NCBI GenBank assembly: GCA_028826165.1
Contig: JAPDFW010000053.1
Span: 611,904-675,903 of the forward strand
Origin: Anaeramoeba ignava BMAN
Taxonomy: Eukaryota > Protista > Anaeramoebae
DNA: 64,000 nt
Direction: 5' to 3'
This document shows, piece by piece, positions 5,749-61,032 of this stretch. Within the stretch, counting starts at the first letter, position 1. The number at the start of each line of letters is the position of its first letter. The translations under genes were made by a program, and so were the position numbers. The notes under the pieces were generated by a model. That model searched no databases, had not been told where the DNA came from, and saw only the letters and a list, made by a program, of their open reading frames with translations.

Positions 5749-5860
5749 ATTTTTTTTTAATTTTTTCATTTTTTTCATTTTTTTTCTTTTCAAATTTAAT
5801 AAACAAAATAAAAACAATAAAATTAATAAATAAAAACAAAAACAAAAACAAAATAAAAAA

Positions 5861-23305: not shown

Positions 23306-27998
<4,693 letters not shown>

Positions 27999-30994: not shown

Positions 30995-32134
30995 ATGAGT
31001 AAATTACGTGATTCTTTTTTACGTCAAAAAGAAAATATTCTACAAAAAATTGGAAAATCAAAACAAACTAAAGATGAAGAATTTGAACAAATTTCAAGTG
31101 TAAAAATAAAAAATTAAAAATTAAAAATTAAAAAAATCATTTTAAAAATAATTTTTTCTTTTCTTTCTTTTTTAAATAGGAATTTAATAACCATGAAATT
31201 GAAATGAAAAGATTGTATGATTTATAAAAAATATTTTTATGACTTAAAGTGTATTTTTTAAATTGAAAAAAAAAATATTTTGATGATGTAAAAGATTCAA
31301 TTCAGCACAACAATTTTTTCAAGCATTAAAAACACTTGAAAACACAGCAAAGACATTATCTAATGAGATTGAGGGATTTTATTCAAATTCTAAAATAACA
31401 AATCAAACAATTCCATCAAAAATTGCGGGAAATTTTTCTGCAATTATGGATTCAATTGAGGAATTAAATGTAAAAATATATCAATAAATAATAATGAAAT
31501 CAACAATTAAAAATTAAAGAATCATTCTATAAACAACTCAAAAAGAACGAACATATGGAAGTTATTAGACCTATTAATTCGCAAATTAAATATATTGAAG
31601 AAACAAAACAAAAATTTCAAGTTCGAAAAAAAAATCAATTACAACTTGATGTTTTAAAGAAAAAAATGGAGAAAATTGAAGAGAAAAAAGAAAAGAAACC
31701 AGAAGCAATTTCTGAAGTAAATTAACAAATGCATGAAATAAAGCAAAAAACGCTTATTAATATTTATTGATTTTTCTTCTTGATTTTTCAAGATTGAAAA
31801 TAAACTTCAAAAAGCAGAATTAGATTTTGTTCAAATTAATGATGATTGCAAACAAAATATCAGGAAAATATTCCAGAATAAGCATGAGGCTATGAATATT
31901 CCTCTTATTTCACTTTTAAGAGGACAAGAAGCAATGCTTTCTAGTTTTAAATCAACTCCTTTTACACCTTTTTATTTTGCAAAATCTCAACAAAATCAAA
32001 ATCAAAATCAAAATCAAAATCAAAATCAAAATCAAAATCAAAATCAAAATCAAAATCAAAATTATTTATTAACAGAAAAACCTAAAAATTTTGATAAAGA
32101 AATTGAAGATGAGAAAAAGAATAATGAGAAATAA
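30995..32134 (+). CDS. N-BAR (amphiphysin/Rvs161-like) domain protein, multi-exon
   Basis: MSKLRDSFLRQKENILQKIGKSKQTKDEEFEQI (N-BAR amphipathic start with TKDEEF), EVIRPINSQIKYIEETKQKFQVRKKNQLQLD, and KLQKAELDFVQINDD. About four short introns. The exact splice frame near 31470-31555 is uncertain. Confidence 0.72.
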
Positions 32135-32820
32135 TAAAATTAAATTTAAAATCAAAAATGAAAACAAAATCAAAATTAAAATCAAAATTAAATTTAAAAT
32201 TTAAATCAAAATTTAAATTCAAAATCAAAATTAAAATTTAAATTTAAAATGAAAATCAAAATCAAAATCAAAATTAAAATCAAAATTTAAATCAAAATCA
32301 AAATCGAATAATGAGAAATAATAAAATCAAAATTAAAATTAAATTTAAAATCAAAATTAAAATTTAAATCAAAATTAAATTTAAAATCAAAAATGAAAAC
32401 AAAATCAAAATTAAAATCAAAATTAAATTTAAAATGAAAATGAAAATCAAAATCAAAATTAAAATCAAAATTTAAATCAAAATCAAAATTATTTATTAAC
32501 GGAAAAACCTAAAAATTTTGATAAAGAAATCGAAGATGAGAAAGAGAATAATGAGAAATAATAAAATTAAAATTTAAAATGAAAATCAAAATCAAAATCA
32601 AAATTTAAAATCAAAATCAAAATTAAAATTTAAATCAAAATTAAAATCAAAATCAAAATTAAATTCAAAATCAAAATTAAAATTAAAATCAAAATTAAAT
32701 TCAAAATCAAAATTAAAATTAAAATTAAAATCAAAATCAAAATCAAAATCAAAATCAAAATCAAAATCAAAATTAAAATCAAAATTTAAATCAAAATTAA
32801 AATCAAAATCAAAATTTTAT
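32135..32820 (+). repeat. AAAATC/AAAATT microsatellite containing duplicated copies of the BAR gene 3' end
   Basis: 32487-32570 repeats 32060-32140 with 3 substitutions. A shorter fragment occurs at ~32306-32328. Confidence 0.85.
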
Positions 32821-37907: not shown

Positions 37908-40900
37908 TTAATTTAAAAATTCTAATTTGGATCGATCAATTTTTTCTTTTTCAACAGCTTTAAAAAAAGCAGAAATGAATTCAGAAATTGAAACAATAGG
38001 TTTTTGCAAGAAAAAAGAATGAGTAATTAAAGGGAGTTTTCTTAAAGTTCTTCCACTATAACCTTCACATTTCTCAGCAATTTGATAAAAAAGTAAACTA
38101 GAATTTGTAGTTTCATTTTTTTTTGAATCACGAAGTAATTCAATTGATTCACAATCCAAAAGAGATCTTCTTGGAGTTATTATTCCAACTCTCATTAACT
38201 CTTCAGTACATGATCTTAATATTTCATATCTTGCTTTTTGTGTTGGTAATCCAATGTATTGTTTTAAATCTGCTCGATCTACAAATGCTAAATCAATTGC
38301 TCCTGTTATATTTGATGTTGTTAATACTAATACATTTGGAAATTGTTTGAGTTGATCTGATTTGTGTTAATAATGCATTTACAACTCTAATTGCATCTGA
38401 TGGTTCAGCTCCTTTTAATAATAATATTTAATAATTAATATTTACAAATAATATTTAATATTTAATATTTAATATTAAATATATAATAATAATATTTAAT
38501 ATTTAATATTTAATAATTAATATTTAATATTTAATATTTAATAATTAATATTTAATATTTAATATTTAATATTTAATATTTAATAATAATATTTAATATT
38601 TAATAATAATATTTAATAATTAATATTTAATATTTAATATTTAATAATTAATATTTAATATTTTATATTTAATAATAATATTTTATATTTAATAATAATA
38701 TTTAATAATTAATATTTAATATTTAATAATTAATATTTAATAATTAATATTTAATATTTTATATTTAATAATAATATTTAATATTTAATATTTAATAATA
38801 ATATTTAATATTTAATATTTAATAATAATATTTAATATTTTATATTTAATAATAATATTTAATATTTAATATTTAATAATAATATTTAATATTTAATATT
38901 TAATAATAATATTTAATATTTAATATTTAATATTTAATAATAATATTTAATATTTTATATTTAATAATAATATTTTATATTTAATAATAATATTTAATAA
39001 TAATATTTAATAATAATAATTAATATTAAATATTTAATATTTAATATTTAATATTTAATATTTAATATTTAATAATTAATATTTAATAATTAATAATAAT
39101 AATTAATAATAATATTTAATATTTAATAAATAATATTTAATAATTAATAATAATATTTAATAATTAATATATAATAAACAAACCAGACATCGCAGATTTT
39201 CTTGCAGTAGCTAAACTCTCAACTTCATCAATTAATAAAAATACAAATGATCCTTGATCTTCTATTAATTCTCTTATCTTCTTGAATAATTTCATTACTA
39301 ATTTTCCTGATTCAGAAAACCATTTACTAAATAATGAATGAGTATTGATTTCAATAAGTTGACAAAAAGCATATTTGTTGCTAAATTTAATAGAAAGCTT
39401 TTGAGAAAGTGCTCGACATAATGAAGTATTATGAGTTACAGTAAAATCACCAAGAAGAAAACGTCCATTCCCATCAATTTCAAACCCAAAATATTCACCA
39501 ATTCCAACAGATTCAATTTCAAATTCTGTTAATAAGCAATCACTCTTATTTTTTTGTGGATTTCCCTTTTTATAATACGATAAAATTGGTAATTCTTCTA
39601 ATTCTGAACCACAAATAAAACATTCATAATTCTCATTAGAATTTTTTGATTTTGAACTAATATCTTTTTTTTCAGCAGAAAAACCTAATGATCTAGCAAT
39701 ATAAATTATATCCTCTATTAATTTTTCAGATTCCCCACAAAATTTATAGCAATTATTCTCATAAGATCCAAAAGAATCAAACAATCCAGCTAATAAAGAT
39801 AATCGAATATTTCTTGAATTGCATTTATAATCTATTGGAATGCGTTTATGATCACCAAGATTATATTTTAAGAGGCGTTGATAAAATAAGTTTTTTTCAT
39901 AACCATAAGCTGAAAATTTCTTTCCATCTTGAATATAAATATTATATTCTCCATTTTTTTCCTTTTCCAAACATAAATGATAATTTTTCAAATATTCACT
40001 AAAATATTGCGAAATTTTATCATTTTCTATTGATATTTTCTTTGAATTACAAGAGCAATTCCCTAGCAAATATCCAACTATATAAGGATCTAAATCAACC
40101 TCTTTTTCAATAAAATCAATATATGTTTTGTATAATTTGTAGTGGCTTTTCCAGTAAGAAGATTTTTGTAAATAATCTTTAACAGAAATTTCAATGATAG
40201 AATTTTGATCATTATAATTTGGATCATTTTGAGATTTTTTTTTCAAGCATAAAATATGGGGTTCATTGCAAATCCATGGTTGACCCTTTTTTGGTATAAT
40301 TTTATACATTTGATCTTTTCCACAACAAATTGACAAAACATTTCTTGGATTTGAATCATCACCCATTAATTGATCCCCAATTAAAACATCCTCCACTTTC
40401 TTTATTCCTCCATCAAACATTAAAACAGAAGTTCCTGGAGCTAAGCATTTCCCAGTTCCACTTGGGCCATGAAAAAGAACAACGCGATTAAAAGAGATCA
40501 AATTTGAATCCACTTTTTTTTCTGAAAAAAGAACAGTTGTCAAAATGTAATTGATTAAATTTTGCTTTAAATTTTCCTCAAAAAATAAACTTTCCCACAA
40601 TCCGTTAAATTGTTTTGATGGAAGAATCCATTGAAAACAAGCAGAAAGATCTGCATCTTCTGAATCAACATTTTCTTCTAAAATTGGTTCTTCATTTAAT
40701 TGATAAACATAAATTTTTGTTTCAACTTCTGAAATTTTTAAATTAGGATCAATTGATAAATTTTCTTTTTCTTGTGTTTCTTTATTAACTGTTATTTTCT
40801 CAACATTTTCATTTAAGATCTTTTCATTTGAAAAATTGATAGTTTTTTTTTCAAGAATTTTTATTACTTTTTCATTTTTGATCTTTTCATAAATTAATTC

Positions 40901-42165: not shown

Positions 42166-45100
42166 ATGAGTTCTTTAAAAGAAATTTTAAAACAATCTAA
42201 AAAACCAATTCAAATTGATTCCATTTTTGGTTTAAAATTTACACAAAAACAATCAAATTTATTTTTTAAATTCTGCAAAAATTCCAATGAAATATCAACA
42301 AACTGGGATAATAGACACAAACCAGTTGTTGTAAATAAATAATTTTAAAAGCAAAAAAAAAAACAAAAACAAACACAAAAAAACAACTTTAATAAATTTT
42401 TCTTAATTGTATTTCTTAATTGTATTTTTTTTATATATATAATTTAGTCAAATAAATTGGATTGGTATTTCAAGTTTTCTCAAATTTTCCTTCGTTCACA
42501 TAAAAATTGGATTCCTCATCCTCAACAAATAATTACAAATTCAAAAAATCCAAAACCAACAAAATTAAAAAGAAGGTTTAAAAATTTAACTCATTTTGAA
42601 CAAGCAATTAAATCAAATCAAATTCATCCTCCAGAATTAATTTATGAAACAATTCGTTTTTTAAAAATTTTTTGTCAATGGATTGATTCAGGTTCAATAT
42701 TTAATTTAATATTTCTATTTTATAATTTTGATTTATTATTTATTATTAATTTTTATTAATTTATTAGAATTTGAATCAAATTTAGAAGAAAATATTCAAG
42801 AAAAAGATGAACAACCAAAATTAATCATTTCTCAATCTTCTCAAAATTGTGGGATATCTTTATTAATGGCTACTTTATTAGCTAAATCTTTTTATAATAG
42901 AGAACAATTAAGAGATTTTGGAATTATTAATATTCTTCTTTATTTAATAAATAAAACTATTAAAATACTTGAAAATGTTAATCGTGAAGTAATTGAACAA
43001 AATAAATATTTTTAAATGGAAAATCAAATTAATTTTAATTTTAAATATAAAAATATTTATTTTAGAAACAAAAACAAAATTTGGATTCAATTTCAAAAAA
43101 AGTTGATTTTGTTGAATTTATTCTCTCAAATACTTTAAGATTAATTGAATTATTTATTGATCCTGAATTTTATCCCAAAAAAAAGCATATTTTAAAATTA
43201 ATTGAAGGAAATGATTTGATTCAAAAAATAATTCGTAAAAAACATTTAAAATTTCAAAATTAATATTTTTAATTAATAATTTTTTAATTTTTAATTTTTT
43301 AGAATTACATCATTTGTTCCTTTTATTATCTCAAGATTTTTCTTTAAATTTAGAAGAATATAATATTCAACTTTTATTGATAGAAATGTTCAGAGTTTTT
43401 AATCAACAAGATCTTTTCCATGAAAAACAAATTTCAAAAGTTACAAATATGATAATTGAAAATTTATATCCTTCAAATTTCCAACTTCCTAAAATTCATT
43501 CTAAAGAAAAATTTGAGGATTCTTTTGATAATATAACAAAAATCATTTTAGACGAGCAAGAAAATAATTCAAATCAAAATGTCCAAATTAATATTGAAGA
43601 ACAAAAGCATCAAGAAGAAAAACTCATTTCATTTCATTTAAGAATTATTGTTTTAAAATTAATTCGTGAAATTATCCAAAAAAATCCTTTTATCGAACAA
43701 GAAATTATTGAAAATATGAATATAAGCTTATTGGGTGATTTTATTTTATGGATTGGATTTAATTTCCCAACAAAAATAAATTCTTCAAAGTTTACAGAAA
43801 AACCCGAATTTAATGAAGAAATTGATTGTATAATTTTATTTAAATTTAATTTAATTTTAATTTAATTTTATTTAAATTTAAATTTAATTTAATTTAATTT
43901 AATTTTATTTAATTTAATTTAATTTAATTTAATTTAATTTTAATTTAATTTAATTTTAATTTAATTTAATTTAATTTTAATTTAATTTAATTTAATTTAA
44001 TTTAATTTAATTTTAATTTTAATTTTAATTTTAATTTAATTTAATTTTAATTTAATTTTAATTTAATTTAATTTTAATTTTAATTTAAAGGAAGAGTCTG
44101 GTGATGTCATCATTTTATTGTTTTTTTATTAAAGAAAGCCACGTGGCAGGGAGACAACTAGTTGAGTCAGGAAAGATCATTTTGAGTCAGTTCTTGGAAC
44201 AAAATAAATTTTTCATTTTTTTTTTCATTTTAATCATTTTAACGAATTCCATTTTTTTTTTCAACTCCATAGATTTAATTAAAAGAATACCACAAGTATA
44301 TTCTCTTAAGAAAAAAAATTAATATTGGATTTCTAACTGGATAAATATATGATGGAACATATTACACATTGAAATAGAGATATATAATAATAAAAGGGTG
44401 TATAGTTACGTTTTATTTATTTTTGTTCTTTATTCTTCCCTTTAAAACAAAATAATGCTGAAAACAACCGCCCTTTTTACAAAATTTGAAAAAGAAGTGT
44501 ATTGGAAAAACACAACTTTAGTTTCTCATTCAATCATAAAAGTTTAAATAAAAAACCCAAATTCCTTGAAAAATAAAATCAGCATATTTAGTGTAAAAAA
44601 GTTTACTTTTTTGGAACAATTTGGGTACCAAGTAAATGAAGCAAAAAAAAAAATTTTCCAAACCAAAAAAAATTGAATAAAAAAACAAAAGAAAAAGAAA
44701 AAAAAGAGACAACCTCCCAAACAAAATAAATCCTTTCAAAAATTTATGAATATTCGATGACGAACTTTTTCACAAATCTAAAATTCTCAAAGCGTTGGGA
44801 AAGCAAATATGAAAATAATTGACATTTTCGTATGATCCAAAAATGAATTTTTGTTGGATCAGAACAATAGAAAATGATTTGTTTCAATATAGGGAAGAAT
44901 ATTTTAGAAAAAGTTCAAATATCCATCAAGCAGAAAAAAAATTGAAAAAACACACATTTTCTTATATGCTTTAATTTTAGGATTAGTAATTTGAGGAATA
45001 AATTCAAAATTCAACAAATATTATTGTATATTGTTACAAAAGACAATGTGTTAAAAAGAATTATAATATCCCTAAACCTTAACTGGTTTCCAATTTCAAG

Positions 45101-48100
45101 TATCTTTCTACGAGTCACAATTTTCAAAATCAATATTCTTAAAAAACACAATTGTTTTTCCCATTGATCCAAAATTCCAATAATCAAGGAAATAGAAAAA
45201 ATTGGATCTTAGGTTTTCTTGTTTTATTATTGAAATTTATTCCAAGAGAAAAAAAATCTCCAATTATTGTTTCCTCTTCTTTTTCTATTTTTTTCTTTCC
45301 AACCAAAAAACAAACAAACAGATAAATATTTTTTTTAATTAATTTTTTATTGTTTTTTTCCTGATGACATCATCATAGAGATGTCGCCAACTCACAGACA
45401 CTTCCTTTAATTTTAATTTAATTTAATTTTAATTTAATTTAATTTAATTTAATTTAATTTTAATTTAATTTAATTTAATTTAATTTTATTTTAGTCACTG
45501 AATTACCTGAACCTGTTCCATTTGATTCAATTATTTTTCAATCAATTCATAACCAAAATCAAAATCAAAACCAAAATCAAAATCAAATTCAAAATGAAAA
45601 TGAAAATGAAAATGAAAATCAAAATCAAAATGAAAATCAAAATCAAAATCAAATTCAAATTCAAAATGCAAAATGAAAATGAAAATCAAAATCAAAATCA
45701 AATTCAAAATCAAAATCAAAATCAAAATCAAATTCAAAATCAAATTCAAATTCAAATTCAAATTCAAAATCAAATTAAAAATCAAATTCAAAATCAAATC
45801 CAAATTCAAAATGAAAATCAAATTCAAAATGAAAAAGAAATTAAAAAAAAAGAAATGAAAAAAAAAGAAATTCCATTAATTGATTTTTCTCAAATTCAAA
45901 ATAAATATAATATTATTGAAATGAAATTTCCTTTACCAGAAATTAGTTCAATTATTTTAAATACAAAATTGGAAGAATTTTTTGAAGAATTAACTACTCT
46001 TTGCAAAACAAGTTTATTATTATTTATAAATAAATCAAACAATGATAAAATTTCTCTTGAAAATGAAATTACTCCTCAAAATCAATCAAAAATCAAATTT
46101 GATCAAAAAATTTCAAATTTACCAAAATCTTGTCTTTACACAAAACTTATAGAAATTTGTTTGGAAATTTTTAATAACGATTCTAATGAAAAATCTCAAA
46201 ATGAAAATTCAAGAAATTATATTTTAAAGGAGAATCCCGGATTGCAATTATATATTCTAAAATTTTTTCAAATATTATTCGAAATTTCAAAAGATCCAAT
46301 TTTCTCAAAACAAATTTTTTTTGGAAAAATTTATTCAACAAATATTTTCTTTTTATTTTAATGAGGTAAAAAAAAAAAAAACAAAAAACAAAACACAAAA
46401 CAAAATTATTTTTTAATTTAAAATTGTTAATTTAAAATTGTAAATTTTTTTAGAATTTTAAATCATATGAAGATGTTCCTCAAACTTTTAAAATTTTAAG
46501 AAATTATCTCTTTTATTTTGCTTTTTCCGTTTCATATAAACTAGTTTCTTTCACTCCAAATCAAATCACTCAATTAATTAATATTGCTTACAATAACAAA
46601 TCAAATATTAATTTAATTTATCATATTTTTTCAACAATTTATGAGTTTTTGATCTACAAAAGATCTAAAAACCACTCCAAAATTTGGAATCAAAAACATT
46701 TGAAAAATTTTGTGATTTGGTGTTTCATTTGCATCAAATACACACAAAGAATTGGGAGAATTCAAAGGAAAAATTTGAAAACAAACATCAATTATGGGAC
46801 TTTATTAAATTAAGATATTTATCATTGCAAATTTTTTCTAGTTTTGTTTTCATGATACCAGAAATTTTCCAGAATAAATTTTCTAATAATTATATTATTA
46901 ATAATTCTTCAACTGTAGCAACGCTATTAAATTTGGTTAATGAAAACCAAACAAAAGATTTCTCATTTACACTTATTCACAAATTATTTTCTTTTGTTGA
47001 TAAAAATAATTTCAAGAAATTTGAAGTTTTATCATGTGCAATTCTTACAAAGATTTTGGAAATTCAACAAAAAATTGAAGTACAAGTTGAGAAAAACGAG
47101 CAAGTAAAAGAAAATATTAATTCAATAAGAGAAATATTACAATTACTTACAGATATTATATCAAGCTATGGATTGAATCTTCAAAAATTGTTTGTGGAAA
47201 TGGAAATTTATAATTTTTTGAAGCAAGTATTTGGCGATCCTCTTTTACTTTCATCTTTAATAAAAAATATTCTGTTATTACTTTTAGCTATTTTCAAGAA
47301 TTGCCCAGTTAATATTGCAACATTCAAAAAACAATTTGGATTTAAAAAACTTCGAAAATATATCATGCAAATAAATCAAGATTTGATTGATTCTGAAGTT
47401 TGCGAAATTATTCTTGATATTATGGTGAATAATGGGAAATTTGATATCAATAAGAATTTTCTTATTGAAAATGAAGATTCTGCTCTTTTTTTATTGCAAT
47501 TATTTTCCAAATCGAATCGAGACATCTTTTGCCAAATTCTTGATATATTTTTCCAAATATGCGAACAATCAATTTTGAACCGTTCAGCTTGTTCTTCTTC
47601 AGGATTCATTTCTTTTTTGATTAAATTCATTACAAAAATTTCAGACTCACCAAAATCAATGGAAATACAAGAGAAAATCATTCGATTAATTGAAATAATT
47701 TCCTCACTTCGAATCACAACAAATGAATTGAAGCTAATTTTCTCTCATTTGAAAAGTCTTCCAGGAAATTTCCGACCACCAAGAAGTTCACTGATTTTAT
47801 CAATTATCAACAAAATCACGCAAAAAACAGAACAGTTCCCGAGATCCTTTTTCAATTTTTCAGGAGAAAGTTCATTTTTAAGACTTTCTTCAGTTCCACA
47901 ATCAATTTTCAAAAGGGGATATTCATTTGTAACTTGGTTTCGACTTGGTGATTTGTTTAGAACAAAGCATCCACAAATGGATGAAATTTATAAGCCAAGA
48001 ATATTTAGTTTTATGTCTAAAGAAAAAGAGGGATTTGAGCTGTTTTTCAACAATATTATTTATCCAACCAATGATGGATCGAATGAAGATGAAAAATCTG

Positions 48101-51100
48101 AAGTTCAGTTTAAATTAAGTTTTGTAATCCATTTGCCATCCAAAAACGTAATAAAAGCACAAAAGGAGATTAGGCTTCAGATCCGAAAATGGTACTTTAT
48201 TGCACTTACACACAAAAACAAAGCATCTTCATTTGGCAAATTCGTTATTTATATCAACGGAAAAGTTGCATATTCTTCTCACAATATCAAATATCCCTCG
48301 TTTTCAGGGTTAAGATACAACCATATTGGATCTGATCCTTTTGGTAAAAATTGTTTTTGTGGACAAATGAGTTCTATTTATTTATTCAATGAAGAATTAT
48401 CTAAGCCGCAAATAGAAGGAATATACTCGCTTTCTCCCAATTACTTTTTATCTTTTTCAGAAGCAGAATGGATAATTAATTCAAGCAAAATAGTTTCTAA
48501 AGAAGATTTTCTTGATGGTTCTCTTCAAAGTAAATTGTTTATGAGTCTCAGAAGCCAAGCTGTAAATAAAGACCAATTTATTGATAAAAATGAGAGAAAC
48601 AATGTCAAGGCACAATTTATTAACGTTTCTCAAGGAACAACCTCAATTATTCATGATGTGATATATCGATCTAACGGGATTAGTGTTCTTTTCCCATTAA
48701 TAATTCAATCAGATCAACCACTTGGATCACAACAAAACATAGAAATTTTTAAAACACAAGAAAATTATAAAAATCTTATTGATTACTCAATAGACCCAGA
48801 AATTTCCAATCAAATATTCAATATCATCAAAAACGTTTTGATTCAAAGTCCTGCAAATCAACAAGGAATGATTCGTTCGCATGGCTTTATGATTTTGAGT
48901 CATTTGTACCAGCATATACATGCTTCGCATATTACAGAAAATCTGATTATTTCAATCCAAGAAATAATCACGCAAATCAATAACCCAATTTTGATAAAAG
49001 ACATGATTCATAACTTCCTTCTTGATTATGATCTTTGGATTTATTGCGATTATGAAATCCAATTGAAATTAATTGAAACATTGAAATTCATCATCTCTTT
49101 TAAAACAAAAGTGGATACAAACCAGAAAAATTCAATTATATTTCTCAGAATAAGAGATTTGTTGGATATTATTTTCTTGTATCTTTGGAATAATTCGGAA
49201 AAAGAACAAAATGTTCATGCCAAACTGGAAACAAAAATACATAAGAATACAGGAAAGATTCTCGGCAAAAAACCAAATGAGGAGCAAACTGGCAAGTTAA
49301 GACAATCGTTTCTTCAATTAATTGAATTATCATTGAATATGAATTATAATAAAGGAGATATATTAGTTTTATTATCTAAATGCCAAATTATCCAAAATAA
49401 TAAAATTGTTTTTGCTCTTCTTCAACAAATCTTGAGGATAATTTCCAAAAATATTTCCATATTGATTGATGATTTGGTTGAAATTAATTTTCTTGATCCC
49501 TTTATATTTCTACTTAACAATTCAAGTGAAAAAGTGCGTATTTTATGCTTTGAAATTATTTATCATTTGCATAAATACCTTCTTTTAATTAAAAAAAAAG
49601 ATGAGAAGGAACCAAAACAACTGATATCAACTCCAAAACAAAAACAAAAACAAAAACAAAAACAAAATAAAAATAATAAAATTGAGCAAAAAAATCAATC
49701 TCAAGAAATTTATCAGAAAATCGATCTCCACAAATCAAGGCTTAATTCTCCTGATGGATTTGAAATGTTTCATAATGTTGTTATAAGATTTCAGCCAACA
49801 CAAAAAATAGTTGATCAATTATTCAATTTACTTTTGATCAAGTTACCATATTCACAAAACATGGAAAATCAAAAAATGATTAAAATTCAAACACCTTGGA
49901 TTTTGAGAACTCTTTTTTATTTAATTCGCAAAAATCCAAATCAAGTTGGATTGAATATTGCGAACCGAGTTTTTTCTCTGTTTAATGGAAATGAAGCGAA
50001 TGTAAAGATATTTGCAAGTCAAAATTATTGGCAAGAATGGATTTTACAAGGATTTTACTTTTCTGAATTTTCATTAGATAATTCAAATGATAATCCAAAA
50101 GATAATTCAAATGATAATTCAAATGATAATTTTGAGCAAAAAATCAATAATACACTTTTATCTATTATCAAATTTGTGTTTAAATTTATTTTCATCAATC
50201 AAGAAATGGTAGCTTTAGATATTTTAAAGATTTTAAACACTTTGGGAATTATGGAAAAGGATGAACAAGAATTTGCATTTGAGCAAAAAAACGTTTTTAT
50301 TCATATTTTCTATCAAGAATTGTTAGTAGGAATTGATGAATCTATTGAATATGAAATGTCTAAAATTAATTTGAAAGAAAGTAAAAAGGAATATTCATTG
50401 ATATTTAAATCAAAATTTCTTGATAAAATCAAGAAGATTAAAGGAGCATTTGAATCAAATCTTGGAGATTTAGTCATTTTGATTGGATATTTTATTTTGT
50501 TTGATAACAAAAAAGAGGCCATGACTTTAAATTTTTCACAGAAAAAGCCAAAACAATCTTTTGTAGATCCAACAACTCAACTTAATCAAAAATTGGTTCA
50601 AAATTTAGTTTTATTTTTGGATAAATTTGGGTTTATTGATTCAGGATTATTTTTCCGAAATGAAGAACAAGGGAAACAAGTTTTTAGGTTTGTTTTACTA
50701 TTTTTGTTTTTCGAAATTGAAGTTTCTGAGTTTCAAAATTGTTCGAAATATCTTGATATGCTACAAAGATTATTTTATATTCATGGAACTCGATCAAAAA
50801 TTGAGAAACAAATTCTGGAAGAAAGAAAAGAATTAATTTTTATTACAACTTCTTATCTTTTCAAAGTTTTGAGATTTTTAGATGAAAATGAAAATGAAAA
50901 TCAAAATGAAAATGAAAATCAATTAGAAAATCAAAATCAAAATGCAAATTCCAAAATTAACAAACAAAGATTAATTGCTGTTCATTTACAAACATTAATT
51001 CGGAATTTTTATGAAATGTTTGCATCTTTTTTAAAATTACAAAATGGAGGAAATTTACTTCCTAAAAATATTGATTTGACTAAGTTTAGCACATATAATT

Positions 51101-54100
51101 CAACAGAATTGATTGATATTTTCAGATCCAAAAAATGGGAATTTGCTATTAAAAATCAACTTTCTTCAATAGGAATTCAATTTTCTGAAGATATTCAAGA
51201 AAGAAGAAATCGATATGAAGAAGAAATACAAAATCAATACAAGAAATTTGAATCAAAATTAACAGAAAAATTAATGGCAAAAAAAAATAACATAAGCGTT
51301 ATTCAAAACAATTTGCAAGAAACTTTCTTTAATTTTGTTCGAAGAGAAAAGGAAATAGCGGAACAAAGAGAAATCAAATATCAACAACGCAAGAAATTTA
51401 TTGTTTCATATTGGCGCAAAATATTCAGAAACTTAACCAATGAAAGAGGGCCTTGGGGAAATGGACTTAAACATAAAGAATCGAACGAAATTTTTTGGAA
51501 ACTTGACAAAACAGAGGATTCATTAAGAAGAAGAATGAAAATGAAAAGGAATTATAAATACAGTTCTTATTATCATGCCTCTGTAAGACGGGATGAGAGA
51601 TTGATTTCTGAAACAAACAAAAGAATTTCTGAATACGAACAACAAAAACAGAATGATTTAGAAAAATTAACAACAGGAATTGATATGATTCCTGATGAAA
51701 ATGTTTTAGATACCGATCAAGATGAGAATGAAAATAATAATAATAATAATAACAATAATAGCAATAATAATGATAATAATCAAGGATATTTATCAGATAA
51801 ATCAAACACATCCCAAATCATGATTTCTGTTGAGCAATCACAAACAGAATCTGAATTTGAATCGGATCATTTCCAAAAAGAAGATCCTGAAGACAAACAA
51901 GAAGAACAAGAAGAACGCCAATTTATTCAACAACTTGAGTTTATTTACACAACTAAATGTAGATTTGTTAGTCCAATGAAATCTTGTCCCGGAAGATTTG
52001 TTTTAACAAAACAATATTTAAGTTTTATTGTTGATCCTAAAATTGAGGAAAAAACACAAATTGATAATATTAAAAGATTGGGGAATTTCCAAAAAAAAGA
52101 AAAGATTGGGAAACAAACAGGAAATAAATTCCAATCAGCGAAACATCCCAAAGAAAATAAAAACAAGTCATGGCCGTTAAATCAACTGAAAACAATTTAT
52201 AAAAGAAGATATTTACATCAACAAACAGCACTTGAGTTTTTTCTGATCAACAAGAAGAGTTTTTTTATTAATTTTTCAAAGGGAGTAAGAGATGAAGTTT
52301 ACGAAAGGATTATCAATATCAAACCAAGCAATTTGGTTATTGAATTTGAAACTGGCGATCCACAAAAATGGATTGAACAATCTCAATATACTCAAAAGTG
52401 GCAAAAATGGGAAATGAGTAATTTTGAATATTTAATGAAATTGAACACTATTGCTAATCGTTCTTATAATGATGTTTCTCAATATCCTGTTTTTCCTTGG
52501 ATTCTTTCTGATTATACATCTTTGGAAATTGATTTACATGATCCAAAAATTTATCGTGATTTATCTAAGCCTATTGGAGCTATGAATGAAGAAAGACTTG
52601 AAATTTTCAAGAATAGATTTGATTTTCAGTTGAAGCAAGGAGATACACCACCATTTCATTATGGTTCTCATTATTCTAGTTCTGGTGTGAAATTTAAAAT
52701 CGATTTAAAATTATTTAAAATTAAATCAAATATTTAAAATTATTTAAAATTAAATCAAATATTTAAAATGAAATTTAAATATTTAAAATTATTTGAAATT
52801 ATTTAAATTAAATTAAAATTAAATCAAATTAAATCAAAATTAAAATTAAATATTTGAAATGAAATTTAAAATTAAATCAAAACTAAATCAAATTAAATTA
52901 AATATTTAAAATTAAATTAAATTAAATATTTGAAATGAAATTTAAAATTAAATATTTGAAATTAAATATTTAAAATTAAAATTAAAATTAAATATTTAAA
53001 ATTAAATCAAATCAAATTAAATCAAATATTTAAAATGAAATTTAAAATTAAATCAAATTAAATCAAATTAAATATTTAAAATTAAATCAAATATTTAAAA
53101 TTAAATCAAATTAAATTAAATTAAATCAAATATTTAAAATTAAATTAAATCAAATCAAAATCAAATTCAAATTAAATATTTAAAATGAAATTTAAAATTA
53201 AATTAAATCAAATCAAATCAAATTCAAATTAAATATTTAAAATTAAATCAAAAATTAAATTAAATATTTAAAATTAAATCAAAATTAAATTAAATATTTA
53301 AAATTAAATCAAATATTTAAAATTATTTAAAATTATTTAAAATTAAAATTAAATATTTAAAATCATTTAAAATTAAATCAAATTAAAATCAAATCAAAAT
53401 TAAATCAAATCAAATCAAATCAAATCAAATTAAATATTTAAAATCAAAAATTAAATCAAAATTAAATTAAATATTTAAAATTAAATCAAATCAAATTAAA
53501 TCAAATCAAATTAAATCAAATTAAATCAAATTAAATATTTAAAATTAAATCAAATATTTAAAATTATTTAAAATTAAAATTAAAATTAAATCAAATCAAA
53601 TTAAATTAAATCAAATATTTAAAATGAAATTAAATCAAATATTTAAAATTATTTGAAATTATTTAAATTAAATTAAAATTAAATCAAATTAAATCAAAAT
53701 TAAAATTAAATTAAATCAAATCAAATATTTAAATTAAATTAAATCAAATTAAATCAAATCAAATATTTAAAATTATTTAAATTAAATCAAATTAAATCAA
53801 ATATTTAAAATGAAATTTAAAATCAAAATTAAATCAAATATTTAAAATTAAATCAAATCAAATCAAATTAAATCAAATCAAATCAAATCAAAATAAATAT
53901 TTAAAATTAAATCAAATATTTAAAATTATTTAAAATTAAAATTAAAATTAAATATTTAAAATTAAATCAAATCAAATTAAATCAAATATTTAAAATGAAA
54001 TTTAAAATCAAAATTAAATCAAATTAAATTAAATTAAATCAAATATTTAAAATTATTTAAAATCAAATCAAATCAAATTAAATCAAATCAAATTAAATCA

Positions 54101-56801
54101 AATATTTAAAATCAAAATCAAATTAAAATCAAATTAAATCAAAATCAAATTAAAATCAAATATTTAAAATTATTTAAAATCAAATTAAATCAAATCAAAT
54201 CAAATTAAATCAAATTAAATATTTAAAATAATTTAAATTAAATATTTAAAATGAAATTTAAATATTTAAAATTAAATCAAATATTTAAAATTATTTAAAA
54301 TCAAATCAAATCAAATTAAATCAAATCAAATTAAATCAAATTAAATATTTAAAATTAAATCAAATATTTAAAATTAAATCAAATATTTAAAATTAAATCA
54401 AATTAAATTAAATTAAATCAAATATTTAAAATCAAATCAAATTAAATTAAATATTTAAAATTAAATTAAATATTTAAAATGAAATTTAAAATTAAATTAA
54501 ATCAAATCAAATCAAATTCAAATTAAATATTTAAAATCAAATCAAATTAAATCAAATATTTAAAATTAAATCAAAATTAAATTAAATATTTAAAATTAAA
54601 TCAAAATTAAATTAAATATTTAAAATTAAATCAAAATTAAATTAAATATTTAAAATTAAATCAAAAATTAAATCAAATCAAATTAAATATTTAAAATCAA
54701 ATCAAATTAAATCAAATCAAATTAAATATTTAAAATTAAATTAAATATTTAAAATTATTTAAAATTAAATCAAATATTTAAAATTAAAATCAAAATAAAA
54801 ATAAAATTAAATCAAATTAAATCAAATATTTAAAATTAAATATTTAAAATTAAATCAAATATTTAAAATGAAATTTAAAATTAAATCAAATTAAATCAAA
54901 TTAAATCATTTAAATTAAAATCAAATTAAATCATTTAAATTAAAATCAAATTAAATCAAATATTTAAAATGAAATTTAAAATCAAAATTAAATCAAATAT
55001 TTAAAATTAAATCAAAATCAAATCAAATTAAATATTTAAAATTAAAAATATTTAAAATAAAATAGGTGGATTGCTTTACTACTTAATTAGATTGGAACCC
55101 TTTACTGGATTACATGTTTATCTTCAAGGTGGAAAATTCGATCAAGCTGATAGAGTTTTTAATTCAATTGCTGAAGCTTGGAATATTTGTCAAACAAGTA
55201 CATCAGATGTTAAAGAACTCATTCCTGAATTCTATTATCTTCCAGAATTTCTTTCTAACAAAAACAAATACAATCTTGGAAAAAGACAAAGATCACAAAT
55301 CCAAATTGGAGATTGTTTACTTCCTCCATGGGCAAAAACACCAGAAGAATTTATAAGAATACAAAAAGAAGCATTAGAAAGTGAATTTGTTTCTCAAAAT
55401 ATTGACAAATGGATTGATTTGATATTTGGATATAAACAAAGAGGAAAAAAAGCAATCAAAGCGTTTAATATGTTTTATTATCTTACTTATGAAAACTCAA
55501 TAAATTTTGAAAACATAAATTCATCAAATGAGAAAAAATCAATTGAATTACAAATTGAACATTTTGGACAAACACCATCACAAATATTCAGACAAAAGCA
55601 TCCTCAAAGATTACCAATAAAACAAGTCATTCATAATATTTTGGATCTAACTTTATATTGGAGATTGAAAAGCGACCAAAGATACAGGAAATTTAGCTCA
55701 AAAGTCGCTAAATCTCCGATTATTTTTGTTTATTTTTCAAAAGCAGATGAATTATTTTCTTCATGGGAATATCCGATAATATTAACAATTGATGAGAATA
55801 GAAATGTAGGAATGCATTCATGTTCACTATCACCATATAAAACTTTCACAAAAGAAATGGAATTTAATATAGAAGAAGAAAATGAAAATGGAAATGAAAA
55901 TGAAAACCAAAATGAAAATGAAAATGAAAATGAAAATTCAAAATCAAAATCAAAATCCAAAAAAATTGCATACTCAAAAAAATCGGACAATCCAAAATAT
56001 TTATTCCCATTTAAACCAGATGCGCAATACGACAATCGAAGCCAAATCGGATATTCTTATTCACCCAAAATGAACAATTTTGCAAATTGCTTTTATTTTG
56101 TTAGTGAACGACCACTTTTATTTAGTTGTGGATATTGGGATGATAGTTTCAAAGTGACTGATATCGAAAAAATGAAATTATTACAAAGCATAACACATCA
56201 TTCAGACATTGTGAGTTGTTTAAGTTATGATTCTGGATATCTTGCAACAGGATCATATGACACAACAATTATGATTTGGAGATTTAATGAAGAACAGGAA
56301 AAAATCGATACAAATCCTGTTCATGTTTTTATGGACATGATAGCAGTAACTTGTTTGGATATTTCTGTTGATTTGGATGTTGTTATAAGTGGTTCAGAAG
56401 ATGGAACTTGTATCATTCACACACTTTTAGAAGGAAAATATGTTCGAACAATTGTGAATGAAAATTTTTCACCTTTAACGCTATTGAAAATCACAAAAGA
56501 CGGTTTTATTGTCACTTTTTCAGAAAGTGATCATGTTTTGTCTGTTTATTCATTAAATGCTACTTTGATAATGAAAAGGAAATTATTAGAAAATATTAAA
56601 TGTTTGGATGTTTCAAATGATTCAAAAATTTTGGTTGTTGGAACTGAACAAAAGAATATTCATTTGTATAATTTACATGATTTCTCTTTAATTCAAACAT
56701 TTGAAGTTGATGATTCAGTTATTTCACTTCGTTTTTATGAAGTTTGGAGATTTATTTTGGTTGGAACTTCACAAGGAAAAATAATATTACTTTTCTTATG
56801 A
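42166..56801 (+). CDS. BEACH-domain protein (neurobeachin/LRBA/NBEAL-like: ARM/ConA-like, PH, BEACH, WD40), ~3400 aa, 8 exons
   Basis: GYSFVTWFR...KWYFIALTH...FCGQMSSIYLF (ConA-like), FWKLDKTEDSLRRRMKMKRN, KRRYLHQQTALEFF (PH), TQKWQKWEMSNFEYLMKLNTIANRSYNDVSQYPVFPWILSDY...HYGSHYSSSG|GLLYYLIRLEPF...DVKELIPEFY...FGQTPSQ, then WD40 repeats. Introns 42331-42447, 42692-42767, 42989-43065, 43235-43302, 43828-45494, 46366-46453 and 52685-55065. Attaching the 5' exons to this gene is inferred from splice phases. Confidence 0.9.
44089..45406. mobile_element. Defective DNA transposon, Kolobok-like (TTAA target duplication, AG...CT termini), 1318 bp, intronic
   Basis: TTAA at 44085-44088 and 45407-45410. 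Left end AGGAAGAGTCTG versus right-end reverse complement AGGAAGTGTCTG (11/12). Subterminal inverted TGATGTCATCA (44102-44112) and TGATGACATCA (45362-45372). Complex sequence interrupting a continuous TTTAA microsatellite. No intact long ORF. Confidence 0.82.
52685..55065 (+). repeat. BEACH intron (2381 nt), filled by AAATT/AAATC/AAATATTTAAAAT/AAAATGAAATTT repeats
   Basis: Splits the BEACH domain at HYSSSG|GLLYY; GTGTGA donor, AATAG acceptor. Confidence 0.9.
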
Positions 56802-56983: not shown

Positions 56984-59422
56984 TTATCTTTGATTTGGTT
57001 GAAAATTTGGTTGAAAAGTTGATTGATTTGATGATTGTTGATAAGTAGAAGTTTGCGAATTTAAATTTGATTGTTGATAATTTGATTGTTGATAATTTGA
57101 TTGTTGATAATTTGATTGACTAGGATAAGTAGTTTGTTGATAACTAGTCTGATTTGGATAAACTGAGTGATGATAATTTGAATGATAAGTTGGTTGTTGA
57201 TAAGCTGATTGATAATTTTGATTGTATTGATTTTTAGAAGATTTTGAATAATAATTGTTTCCATAAGATTGATTGTAATTTTGATATCCCTTTTGATTAT
57301 AATAGTAACTTTGATTTGGATTCATTCCCATCATCCCAGGATTTTGTTGTGTGTATCTATTTCTTTGATAGGGTGAATAGGGATGGAATTGCTGAGCTCC
57401 AAATGTTTGATTTTGATAATAGTTTGAAAATCGTTTTTGTTTTAGTTTTTGATCTTGAGGAATACACCATTCAATTTTCAGCATTCTTCCTTTGAATTGA
57501 TGTCCTTGATATTTATCTATTGCCTCTTCGGCTTGTTTTCTTGTTTTAAAATTAATAATCGCATGTCCAAGTGGTCTTGATGTTAACTTGTCCAGCGGAA
57601 TTTTGACTCTTTCAATTCCTGTTACTGATCCTCCAAATAGATTGTATATTTCATCTTCTCGAGTTTCTCCTGGAACACCTTTAATAAATAGAGTTTTCAC
57701 ACTTAAACTATGTTTGAAAATTATATTTTTATATTTATATTTTTTAATCCAAATCAAAATTAAAAACTTCAATAAATAAATATTCAAATTGCTGTTCTTG
57801 TCTTAATGTTGAAATTATACACAATTCTTGGATCTTGTGCTTTTATTTGTGCAAAAGAGGCAAATAAATCAGACATTCCAAGAGTTGCTGATCTTGTTAT
57901 ATTTTTTAAAGCTTGTGAAGCTAATTTATTTGTTTTAAATGTTGCCCATCCATAAGATTTAGATTTTCCATCACTACTGTATGCGAGATCAAAACTTTCT
58001 AAAGGAACTCCTGCTACTTTTTCAATTTCTTGTTTAGTTTCTTCTTCTGTAAAATTACGAGGGATTTTTCCAATAAAAAGTTTATTTTTTGGATCGATTA
58101 AATTGATTTGGACTTCTTGGCTAATTAAAAATAATATTAAAAATAAATTTAATTAAATATTTAAAATAAATTTAATTGAATTGAATATTGAATATTGAAT
58201 ATTGAATATTGAATATTGAATATTGAATTGAATATTGAATATTGAATATTGAATTTTGAATATTGAATATTGAATATTGAATATTGAATTAAATTGAATT
58301 AAATATTGAATATTGAATATTGAATATTGAATATTGAATATTGAATATTGAATATTGAATATTGAATATTGAATATTGAATATTGAATATTGAATATTGA
58401 ATATTGAATATTGAATATTGAATATTGAATATTGAATATTGAATATTGAATATTGAATATTGAATATTGAATTAAATATTAAAAATATTAAATATTGAAT
58501 ATTAAATTGAATCTAAATATTGAATATTGAATTAATTGAATATTGAATATAAAAATAATGAATATTGGAATATTGAATGAAATTGGGAATTGGAATATAT
58601 TGAATTGGAATTAAATTGGAATTGAATTGAATTAAATATTGAATATTGAATTGAATATTTAAATTGAAATTGAATTGAATTGAATTGAATTGAATTGAAT
58701 TGAATATTAAATTGAATTGAATATTGAATATTGAATATTGAATATTGAATATTAAATTGAATTAAATATTGAATATTGAATTAAATTGAATATTGAATAT
58801 TGAATATTGAATATTAAATATTGAATATTGAATTGAATTATATTGAATTGAATTGAATATTGAATTGAATATTAAATCTCAATCCAATAGCATCAATAAG
58901 AAATATTATTTACAATTTTCCTGTAATTTGATCTTGAAAAATTGGTTTTTTAATCATATCTAAACATTTTTGAACAGATTCTTTATCATAAAAACGAACA
59001 AATCCAAAACCTCTTGTTCTTCCAGTAATTTTATCTTTAACAACTTTTGCACTATGGATATTACCAATAGATTCAAAAGCTTTACGAAATTCTTCATCAG
59101 TTACACCTCTAGCAACATCTCTCTTTTTAATTTAATTTAATTGAAAATTTTTTTTTATTTAAATTTTTTAATTGATTTTTTTTTATTTGAAATTTTTTTT
59201 TAATTTATTTACAACAAAAACTCCAAAATCAATCGCATCTTCAAATACAAAATTTTCATCATCTTCAAAAGTTATTACTTGTCCAGCTTCTTCATTAATT
59301 TCAAAACCTTTTTTTTTAATTTTAGTTTGATTTTCATTTTCATTTTCATTTTGATTTTCGTTTTGATTTTCATTTTCATTTTCGTTTTCGTTTTCGTTTT
59401 GATTTTGATTGTTTTGTTGCAT
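56984..59422 (-). CDS. Three-RRM RNA-binding protein, hnRNP Q/R (SYNCRIP)-like, with a Q/N/Y-rich C-terminal tail (4 exons)
   Basis: RRM1 GVFV|RDVARGVTDEEF...TGRTRGFGFVRF; RRM2 KNKL..GKIPRNFTEEE...SKSYGWATF; linker FAQIKAQDPRIV|LSVKTLFIKGVP; RRM3 PLGHAIINF. Introns 59212-59123, 58913-58121 and ~57820-57708. Confidence 0.8.
58121..58913 (-). repeat. RRM-gene intron 2, filled by CAATATT/CAATT repeats (sense strand)
   Basis: Long pure (AATATTG)n run on the plus strand; same units as RTEL1 intron 2. Confidence 0.9.
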
Positions 59423-60289
59423 TTTCTTTTATAAAATTTTTTCTTTTTTTAATTAAGAAATTCTTTATCTTTTTTTTTTTAATTTAAAAAAAAGTAAAAA
59501 ATGACTTATTATTTTTTAAAAAAAAATTTTTTTTTCTTTTTTTTTTTCCTTTTTTTTTTGTTGTTTTTTTTTAAATGATTCCAATCCTAAATTTCTATTT
59601 GAAAATCGCTTTAAAAATTGCTTTAAAAATTTAAATAAAGTAACGAATTAAAAATTTTAAATAGAAATTGTTTATTAAAATTATTTTTAAATTTAATAAT
59701 AAAATTTAACAAAAAAAAAAACATAAACAAAAAAAAAAGATTAATAAAAAATAAATTATAAAATCAAATTTAAACATTCTTTTTATTTTTATTTATCAAA
59801 TTATTATCATTTCTATTTTTTAACTTGTTTCATAATTTAAAAAACAATATTTTTTTCTATTATTGTTTTGAATTAAATTAAATTGAATTGAATTGAATAT
59901 TGAATTGAATTGAATTGAATTGAATTGAATTGAACATAAATCAACAACTTTAATTTGTAATTCAATTTTTAATTCAATTTTCTAATAGGATTTTCTTTTT
60001 AATTGTCTAATTGGATTTTTAAATCAATTTCTATTTTTAATTAAAATTAGATTTAAATTAGATTTCAATAAAATTTTAAATTAAAATTTTTAAAATTTAA
60101 CTTGATAAATTTAATTTTATTTTTGTTTTTGTTTTTAATTTAAAAAGGTAAACTTGTTAATGTTGTTCAAATAAGTTCAATTAAGTTCAATTAAAATAAA
60201 AAAATGAAATTTAATTTTATTTAAATTAAAAAAAAAATTTTTTTAAACTAATAATTACTCATTTCTATTAATTTTTACTCATTTCTATT

Positions 60290-61032
60290 CCAATTTTTAT
60301 TAAATTTATTTCAATATTTTAAATAATAATTAATTAATAATTTATTTATATTTTTATTTTAAAATATATATTTTATAAATTAATAATTCCACTTTTTATT
60401 TAATTTATTCCACTTTTTATTTTAAATTTATTTCAATTTTTAAATAATAATTAATTAATAATTTATTTATATTTTTATTTTAAAATATAATTTATAAATT
60501 AATTCCACTTTTTATTTAATTTATTCACTTTTTATTTTAAAATATAATTTATAAATTAATTCCACTTTTTATTTAATTTATTCCACTTTTTATTTTTAAA
60601 ATATATTTTTATAAATTAATTCCACTTTTTATTTTAAATTTATTTCAATTTTTAAATAATAATTAATTAATAATTTATTTATATTTTTATTTTAAAATAT
60701 ATTTTATAAATTAATTCCACTTTTTATTTATTTTATTTTAAATTAATTTTAAATTAATTTTGATTAAATTTATTTCAATATTTTAAATAATAATTAATTA
60801 ATAATTTATTTATATTTTTATTTTAAAATATATTTTATAAATTAATTCCACTTTTTATTTATTTTGTTTTAAATTAATTTTAAATTAATTTTGATTAAAT
60901 TTATTTCAATATTTTTAAATAATAATTAATTAATAATTTATTTTATATTTTTATTTTTAAAATATATTTTATAAATCAATTCACTTTTTATTTATTTTAT
61001 TTTAAATTAATTTTAATTAAATTTATTTCAAT
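60290..61032. repeat. Degenerate ~60-125 bp tandem duplications at the 3' end of the F-box/TM gene
   Basis: Recurrent blocks AAATTTATTTCAAT..TTTAAATAATAATTAATTAATAATTTATTTATATTTTTATTTTAAAATATA and AATTCCACTTTTTATTT. Confidence 0.8.

Follow-up and report, generated by a model that had tools for sequence, protein, structure and literature searches.

An insert with Kolobok-like ends in a microsatellite-filled intron of an Anaeramoeba ignava BEACH gene

An intron of a BEACH gene in Anaeramoeba ignava BMAN consists of a (TTTAA)n microsatellite that is broken by a stretch of complex sequence. Is this stretch a transposable element and, if so, to which superfamily do its ends point? A hidden Kolobok-like DNA transposon had been proposed in an earlier note made from the sequence. 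The proposal was re-examined within the window (the whole stretch of 64,000 nucleotides that was analysed; all coordinates refer to it) and in the 42.8-Mb genome assembly.

The insert and its host intron

The features of the locus were as follows (strand given where one applies):

43303..43827, plus strand: coding exon of the BEACH gene (neurobeachin/LvsC-like) that lies upstream of the intron and ends in phase 1 (open frame; paralogue identity)
43828..45494, plus strand: phase-1 intron, GTATAA...TTTTAG, 1,667 nt, made up of left array, insert and right array (paralogue alignment)
43831..44088: (TTTAA/TTTTAA)n microsatellite to the left of the insert, with 45 TTAA sites (TRF and unit list)
44085..44088: left TTAA, candidate target-site duplication, read directly; TA also fits
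44089..45406: the insert, 1,318 bp long with 25% G+C; it is non-coding and present once
44089..44100, plus strand: left terminal inverted repeat (TIR) AGGAAGAGTCTG, which begins AGGRR
44102..44112, plus strand: left subterminal motif TGATGTCATCA, candidate transposase-binding site
44162..44190, plus strand: direct pair TTGAGTCAG in the left subterminal region, copies at 44162 and 44182, 20 nt apart
45362..45372, minus strand: right subterminal motif TGATGTCATCA, 21 nt farther from the tip than the left one
45395..45406, minus strand: right TIR CAGACACTTCCT (= AGGAAGTGTCTG on the minus strand)
45407..45410: TTAA on the right, likewise a candidate target-site duplication, read directly
45407..45493: (TTTAA/TTTTAA)n microsatellite to the right of the insert, with 15 TTAA sites (TRF and unit list)
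45495..46361, plus strand: coding exon downstream of the intron; ..TELPEPVPFDSIIFQSIH is followed by a Q/N tract encoded by CAAAAT, and the frame shifts by +1 near 45668

The host gene was modelled on paralogue homology and not on a GenBank model. Its upstream exon stops ahead of the GT at 43828 and shares 73-75% amino acid identity with the same exon in two paralogues (L057 and L058; contigs C64 and C60). Both paralogues carry a GT..AG intron of ~90 nt at the identical phase-1 codon position, exon sequence is conserved on both sides of that position (FxELPEPVPF), and the paralogue protein P0002 aligns to the exons on either side. Judged from these alignments, the host intron is real, and its assignment to a BEACH gene, already made in the earlier note, was upheld by the paralogue exons and the intron position; the gene is of neurobeachin/LvsC type. 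The paralogue introns at the homologous position share nothing with the insert. Since the two close paralogues keep a plain ~90-nt intron, the microsatellite and insert are specific to this gene copy; with the four introns upstream in the host gene also short (68-117 nt), the extra 1.6 kb is derived.

The arrays on the two sides of the insert run in the same orientation. The left array was reported by TRF with a period of 5, 48.6 copies and 90% matches, the right one at 45406-45493, and the two arrays together hold 60 TTAA sites in 345 bp, or one per 5-6 nt. When the insert and one TTAA were deleted from the unit list, the array became seamless again. Elsewhere in this region, many introns and spacers are filled by microsatellites or satellites, including a satellite-only intron of 2.37 kb at 52690-55064 of the window.

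Sequence and TRF agreed with the earlier description of a complex stretch of 1,318 bp that breaks a TTTAA microsatellite, with TTAA on either side and inverted ends of 12 nt. The stretch runs from 44089 to 45406, the TTAA flanks are at 44085-44088 and 45407-45410, and the ends, AGGAAGAGTCTG and CAGACACTTCCT, are complementary at 11/12 positions. A second inverted pair, absent from that description, was found inside both ends: the 11-nt motif TGATGTCATCA. With the base composition of the element, the probability of at least 11/12 complementary positions at two fixed boundaries is 2.2e-5, and it is 2.7e-3 once 11 x 11 boundary choices are allowed. A scan of ~390 kb of the genome for TTAA-flanked 12-nt TIRs returned the pair of the insert, one site internal to a pogo TIR, a few AT-rich chance pairs and nothing else. 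Given these probabilities and the outcome of the scan, chance is an unlikely source of the inverted edges.

The duplication itself is ambiguous between TTAA and TA because the site sits inside a TTTAA repeat. The flanks read ..TT[TA]AAGGAAG...CTTCCTT[TA]ATT..; the TTAA of the earlier note occurs on both, and a TA duplication with ends AAGGAAG...CTTCCTT fits equally well. The further suggestion that TTAA-dense intronic microsatellites serve as landing pads for the element was not supported: a genome-wide count of microsatellite/AGGRR junctions, the one narrow measure that was used, showed no excess (18 junctions versus 49 in the control). Small groups that recurred among these junctions were rejected as termini, their upstream sequence being shared too.

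Copy number, coding content and comparison with Kolobok

The element is an orphan present as a single copy in the assembly. A DNA search of the 42.8-Mb assembly with the insert returned the insert itself and short AT-rich matches, and the exact terminal 12-mer occurred only at the two ends of the element. Relaxed searches of the genome stayed below their controls: 90 matches versus 180 for the terminal 15-mer with up to 2 mismatches, and 5 versus 33 for the Kolobok-style pattern TTAAAGGRNNWGTC. Copies sharing the termini and an autonomous partner, both to be looked for according to the earlier note, were found by none of the assembly searches (DNA, 12-mer, 15-mer and pattern); the lack of such copies is the first half of what that note named as grounds for rejecting its proposal. 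With one copy and no second site bearing these termini in 42.8 Mb, no partner transposase can be named. There is no series of copies with independent duplications as evidence of transposition, and at 1,318 bp and one copy the element falls outside the MITE class, whose members are short, at a few hundred bp, and occur as many homogeneous copies.

Several candidate relatives were discarded. Recurrent near-matches to the termini lay inside gene families, with both flanks conserved; the other occurrences of TGATGTCATCA (9 sites in the retrieved stretches) were mostly in unrelated, coding-like sequence; and four metagenome matches to the TIR plus motif were attributed to chance, all being in coding DNA of 40-52% G+C. 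A scan of viral sequences for the same combination gave 0 matches.

No coding content was recognised in the insert. It holds no ORF longer than 73 aa, in keeping with the remark that the ORF track does not reveal it, and no tRNA; Rfam gave one sub-threshold match only. Pfam searches with 9 ORF pieces returned nothing meaningful (a single ComK match of 16.7 bits, below the 22.3-bit cut-off), the two ORF pieces that were searched against proteins of the same genome had no match, and tblastx of the insert against the transposable-element loci compared from the genome had none either.

Kolobok elements combine TTAA duplications with 5'-RR..YY-3' ends, and it is these ends that set them apart from piggyBac; among protists they have been published for trichomonads and Naegleria (PMC9587614). 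In Xenopus, Kolobok/T2-MITEs carry a terminal AGGRR (PMC6004289). The element reads TTAA|AGGAA...TTCCT|TTAA and so has both the RR..YY tips and AGGRR, in addition to its 12-nt TIR (11/12) and the inverted 11-nt subterminal motif. Its right TIR AGGAAGTGTCTG is identical at 9/12 positions to the right TIR of XKol-A3 (AGGACGTGTCAA; PMC6004289, Table 5). In its TTAA flanks, AG..CT tips, AGGRR and short TIRs it resembles Xenopus T2-MITEs (e.g. Xmix) and the autonomous XKol A2-A5 copies. It differs from them in its host, an anaeramoebid, and in being a single copy, whereas T2-MITEs number hundreds to thousands; at 1.3 kb it is also longer than typical MITEs, and the searches of the assembly turned up no autonomous partner with ends like its own. 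A Kolobok DDD/E transposase, its own or in a copy sharing its ends, was not found by ORF, Pfam, protein or end searches. The Kolobok assignment of the earlier note is accordingly retained for the ends (AG..CT, AGGAA...TTCCT), which suggest membership of that superfamily; the transposase-bearing relative that would prove it was not recovered.

Resident Kolobok copies were also sought through the Ulp1 (PF02902) and THAP (PF05485) domains and the protease domain of pogo-Ulp1 elements, and none was recovered; the THAP family search was blank. What the searches did yield were elements of the pogo-Ulp1 and Harbinger-Ulp1 kinds, together with a host gene family of large size. No publication on Kolobok in Anaeramoeba was found in the literature.

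Weighing the possible origins

The 11/12 match of the TIRs falls precisely where the array is interrupted on either side, each end has the second inverted motif internal to it, and TTAA flanks both sides, which together favour a transposon. The segment could instead be old, unique, non-mobile intron DNA on each side of which a (TTTAA)n array grew independently, the inverted edges having arisen by chance. Such an origin would suit a single-copy sequence that lacks both relatives and coding capacity and lies where microsatellites and satellites occupy many introns and spacers (e.g. the intron at 52690-55064, 2.37 kb). Against it stand the low probability of the edge repeat (2e-5 to 3e-3) together with the second motif, the homologous introns of ~90 nt in two paralogues, which share nothing with the insert, and the co-oriented arrays that rejoin seamlessly. 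Base composition argues in the same direction: A. ignava introns have 8% G+C and the genome 19% (PMC11550330), and the insert exceeds both at 25%. This origin is regarded as improbable. An artefact, in which foreign or misjoined long-read sequence was placed within the microsatellite, is very improbable: the assembly is Nanopore-based and the +1 frame break falls in a hexamer repeat near the insert, but a misjoin would not give rise to matching TIRs that have a TTAA at each flank, and one gene continues across the insert.

If the segment is a transposon, two other classes come into question. A non-autonomous Tc1/mariner/pogo-type element with ends AAGGAAG...CTTCCTT and a TA duplication, the TTAA being a coincidence of the repeat context, is unlikely. 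In its favour, TA is as compatible with the flanks as TTAA. Several pogo families (DDE_1 + HTH_Tnp_Tc5) are resident in the genome, also in AT-rich satellites, and at one of them (L036) a seeming TTAA-flanked TIR proved to lie within a longer pogo TIR that is flanked by TA. The insert resembles these resident pogo/Tc1-mariner elements (e.g. L036 and L040) as a TIR-bounded cut-and-paste element within AT-rich satellites. L036 and L040 are, however, 3-3.7 kb long and encode an intact DDE_1 transposase fused to an Ulp1-like protease, whereas the insert is ORF-less; the resident elements have near-identical sister copies, and their termini (TACTCTCTTTCTCACCGATAAC.., TACTATCTTTAACGCCGATAAT..) are unrelated to its ends. 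Genome sites with similar ends did not exceed controls, and AGGRR straight after TTAA is a specific published Kolobok/T2 signature (PMC6004289).

Another superfamily that duplicates TTAA or 4 bp, such as piggyBac or Sola, would account for the TTAA flanks, and short TIRs at a TTAA target are shared with non-autonomous piggyBac elements. piggyBac ends are CC..GG. The tips of the insert are AG..CT, as the earlier note had pointed out in setting piggyBac aside, and no resident family shares its ends. DDE_Tnp_1_7 (PF13843) was undetected in the genome, in a search that lacked a positive control, the control genomes having given no match either. There is only a slim chance that the insert belongs to one of these superfamilies.

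On balance, the segment is probably a lone, dead, non-autonomous relic of a cut-and-paste DNA transposon with Kolobok-like ends. For its history, we infer that the (TTTAA)n microsatellite first took over the short ancestral intron (~90 nt in the paralogues) in this copy of the BEACH gene and that a transposase acting in trans then inserted the element at one TTAA of the array, duplicating it. The transposase would have bound the ends at the 12-nt TIRs and at the inverted TGATGTCATCA motifs. The element would be spliced out with the intron, which it enlarged to 1,667 nt, and it now appears immobile and inert.

Significance of the locus

Taken alone, a single intronic relic of this kind, dead and non-coding, carries little weight. 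It does illustrate how a 1.3-kb TIR element can escape ORF-based annotation while swelling an intron about 18-fold. Anaeramoebae are a metamonad lineage related to parabasalids, and the locus adds a data point for the presence of Kolobok-type ends among them. Host transposons are untreated in the published A. ignava genome paper (PMC11550330).

The locus may also be one case of a possible pattern, in which single-copy TIR elements are lodged in intronic satellites of an extremely AT-rich genome; such a pattern, if real, would bear on the way in which insertions are sheltered by satellites and on the failure of the elements to amplify. A further reading, held to be unlikely, is that A. ignava contains one-off orphan cut-and-paste elements of several superfamilies that survive only in satellite-filled introns, the present element being the Kolobok-type example. 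Such a population would imply either repeated horizontal arrival without amplification or a host block after a single integration, and under a host block the AT-rich intronic satellites would act as a tolerated sink.

The host intron of the BEACH gene

The insert is a real, TIR-bounded (TIR, terminal inverted repeat), single-copy and non-coding insertion. Its host is a BEACH gene (neurobeachin/LvsC-like), where it occupies an intron formed by a lineage-specific microsatellite. The relevant features of the window are as follows:

43828-45494: host intron, 1,667 nt, from the GT at 43828 to the AG ending at 45494 (homology)
43831-44088: left (TTTAA/TTTTAA)n array (sequence and TRF)
44085-44088 and 45407-45410: TTAA flanks (sequence)
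44089-45406: insert, 1,318 bp of complex sequence between both arrays
45406-45493: right (TTTAA/TTTTAA)n array, same orientation as the left (sequence and TRF)
46684-52737: large ORF with Neurobeachin solenoid, DUF4704, PH_BEACH and BEACH domains

The domains of this ORF and paralogue homology bore out the earlier note, which had placed the element within a BEACH-gene intron. The annotated paralogues P0001 and P0002 are both named 'beach domain-containing protein lvsC [Anaeramoeba ignava]'. P0002 (contig C104) matched the window exons flanking the element (42448-42684 and 45885-46277), and directly past the proposed 3' splice site the window gene reads TELPEPVPFD (RRLPEPIPFE in P0002). The closer paralogues, on contigs C64 and C60, were 75% and 73% identical to the upstream exon at the amino acid level, and both carry a plain GT..AG intron of ~90 nt at the identical phase-1 position, with exon sequence conserved on both sides and no (TTTAA)n within either intron. 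Homology therefore argues that the 1,667-nt intron is real, because paralogue exons match on both sides and the C64 and C60 introns lie at the identical position. The microsatellite and the insert would both be derived in the window gene copy, since these paralogues have the plain ~90-nt intron there and the four introns just upstream of the element measure 68-117 nt (GT..AG boundaries read by eye).

Two close paralogues (G000:C64:51415-51924, L057; C60:205424-205933, L058; 73-75% amino acid identity in this exon) and two more distant ones (P0002; P0010 on C1) were found, and the neurobeachin/LvsC family is therefore recently expanded in A. ignava. P0001 is the annotated C60 protein (1,837 aa); it begins well within the region homologous to the window gene, so the model may be truncated at its N-terminus. 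In the exon after the intron, the CAAAAT-coded Q/N tract (45554-45835) contains a +1 frame change near 45668 (at ..CAAAAT G CAAAAT..): the splice-site frame stops at 45670, the frame with the conserved LIDFSQIQNKY runs on, and the C64 paralogue has a single frame throughout. This break is either an assembly error in the hexamer repeat or a true frameshift of the window gene copy.

Structure and content of the insert

The complex insert in a TTTAA array, with TTAA on both sides and inverted ends, was confirmed as the earlier note had described it (sequence and TRF), and the array became seamless again once the element and one TTAA were taken out. The termini (start AGGAAGAGTCTG, end CAGACACTTCCT) are complementary at 11/12 positions; under the base composition of the element itself, such a match has a probability of 2.2e-5 at two fixed boundaries and of 2.7e-3 when 11 x 11 boundary positions are permitted. 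Two features absent from the earlier description were also found: an inverted 11-nt motif, TGATGTCATCA, at 44102-44112 with its complement at 45362-45372, and a direct repeat near the left end (two copies of TTGAGTCAG, 20 nt apart). The element ends did not align outside the TIRs, the inverted motif and these direct copies.

No ORF longer than 73 aa was present in the insert. Pfam searches of nine insert ORF pieces gave nothing meaningful (a single ComK match, 16.7 bits against a cut-off of 22.3 bits), no tRNA was found and the sole Rfam match was below threshold. Two insert pieces searched at the protein level had no relatives in the A. ignava genome, and comparison of the insert with the transposon loci examined and the remainder of the window gave low-complexity matches only. 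The genome of strain BMAN, obtained by Nanopore and Illumina sequencing, is 80.65% A+T and its introns 91.86% A+T (PMC11550330). The G+C content of the element is 25%, versus 8% for A. ignava introns, and somewhat higher than the window average of 19%.

Related copies and superfamily affinity

Genome-wide searches covered the 42.8-Mb, 147-contig A. ignava assembly. The whole element matched itself only, besides short AT-rich matches, and the sole occurrences of the exact terminal 12-mer (W at the variable position) were its own two ends. The 15-mer including TAA (≤2 mismatches) gave 90 matches, versus 180 for the reversed control; recurrent near-matches were rejected as sister termini, as they sit inside repeated genes. 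A relaxed Kolobok-style pattern, TTAAAGGRNNWGTC, gave 5 matches (2 of them the element itself) versus 33 for the control. By these searches, the element is an orphan in this assembly, with neither a sister copy nor an autonomous element having compatible ends. The earlier note had proposed searching for both, and the lack of other copies sharing the termini, as found here, is one half of what it named as counting against its reading. Kolobok copies were sought through Ulp1, THAP and the protease domain carried by pogo; these searches led instead to a host gene family and to elements of pogo-Ulp1 and Harbinger-Ulp1 type. By the pattern searches, any Kolobok copies resident in this genome have ends that differ clearly from those of the element. 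Beyond the A. ignava genome, a metagenome scan gave chance matches only and a viral scan gave none.

The defining marks of Kolobok elements are a TTAA duplication and 5'-RR..YY-3' tips, the tips separating them from piggyBac (PMC9587614). Among Xenopus elements, both T2-MITEs and autonomous XKol copies target TTAA and carry a terminal AGGRR motif; the TIRs printed for them include AGGAGAAGG.., AGGAAATGG.. and AGGACGTGTCAA.. (PMC6004289). The element reads TTAA followed by AGGAAGTGTCTG and so satisfies AGGRR, and 9/12 positions match the XKol A3 TIR; these likenesses are the best positive evidence for Kolobok affinity. The tips do not fit piggyBac, a reading also disfavoured by the lack of any PF13843 match in the genome (a search run without a positive control). 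The insertion site lies within a TTTAA repeat and is equally compatible with TA flanks, so that the element can be read as a Tc1/mariner/pogo type, TA-AAGGAAG...CTTCCTT-TA. TTAA can mislead in this genome: at L036, what appears to be a TIR flanked by TTAA lies inside a longer pogo TIR whose flanks are TA. When ~390 kb of the genome was scanned for 12-nt TIR pairs flanked by TTAA, the matches were the pair of this element, one site within a genuine pogo TIR, and a few pairs that are AT-rich and due to chance. The Kolobok-like identity given in the earlier note agrees with the TTAA flanks and the AGGRR/RR..YY ends, but is weakened by the TA reading and the lack of a related copy. The likeliest reading of the element is that of a dead, non-autonomous DNA transposon whose ends are of Kolobok type; the putative superfamily assignment comes from this end signature.

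Proposed history, satellites and other transposons

A short ancestral intron would have been overrun by a (TTTAA)n array, whose 345 bp include 60 TTAA sites (~6x the window density, itself high at 28 per kb). A non-autonomous element may then have integrated once at a TTAA, with transposase supplied in trans, and diverged slightly thereafter (a single mismatch between the TIRs, and a TIR-to-motif spacing that is 21 nt longer at the right end).

The proposal that TTAA microsatellites act as landing pads was examined narrowly, by counting (TTTAA)-type junctions followed by AGGRR: 18 were found versus 49 in the control, and small recurring junction groups were rejected as termini. The proposal was unsupported by this count and by the much larger TTAA-rich satellite intron at 52690-55064, which contains no complex island or insertion. 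The pogo elements inspected are also located in AT-rich satellites, so a general tendency of insertions to persist in satellites is plausible; a TTAA-specific effect had no support in the junction count.

The BEACH gene thus has two giant introns, the second being the one at 52690-55064 (2.37 kb): it consists wholly of AT satellite (ATTTAAAATTAAATC-like, 3-13% G+C) and interrupts the BEACH domain, and 52689 is joined to 55065/55071 without a gap in A. ignava and A. flamelloides homologues. Simple repeats form a large part of the non-coding DNA of the window, and long micro- and minisatellites are dense at 14668-39177 and 58180-62440, for example:

25417-27740: 18-mer array
31980-32815: (CAAAAT)n
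38414-39176: (TTTAATA)n

Pogo-type elements that combine DDE_1 and HTH_Tnp_Tc5 with a fused Peptidase_C48, and whose TIRs are long (for example TACTCTCTTTCTCACCGATAAC), were seen at four loci:

L036:~3280-6960 (G000:C1): directly in AT-rich satellite; a TTAA within the TIR gives the look of a TTAA duplication
L039 (G000:C41)
L040:~4265-7490 (G000:C20): directly in AT-rich satellite
L041 (G000:C114)

Two ~3-kb copies, 97.5% identical (L038:3605-6559, G000:C35; L043:4677-7666, C98), encode an ~850-aa protein with PIF/Harbinger domains (DDE_Tnp_4, HTH_Tnp_4), whose C-terminal region is 30% identical to the pogo Ulp1-like protease; a third transposon superfamily therefore appears to carry this type of protease in A. 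ignava. Finally, the open frame at L035:2945-7546 (G000:C68) spans 1,534 aa; Pfam gave no match for it, and its C-terminus shows a faint Ulp1-like match. Its central segment (~500-800 bp) recurs at dozens of loci with 70-90% identity, and L035 therefore seems to represent a large gene family of the host, not a transposon.
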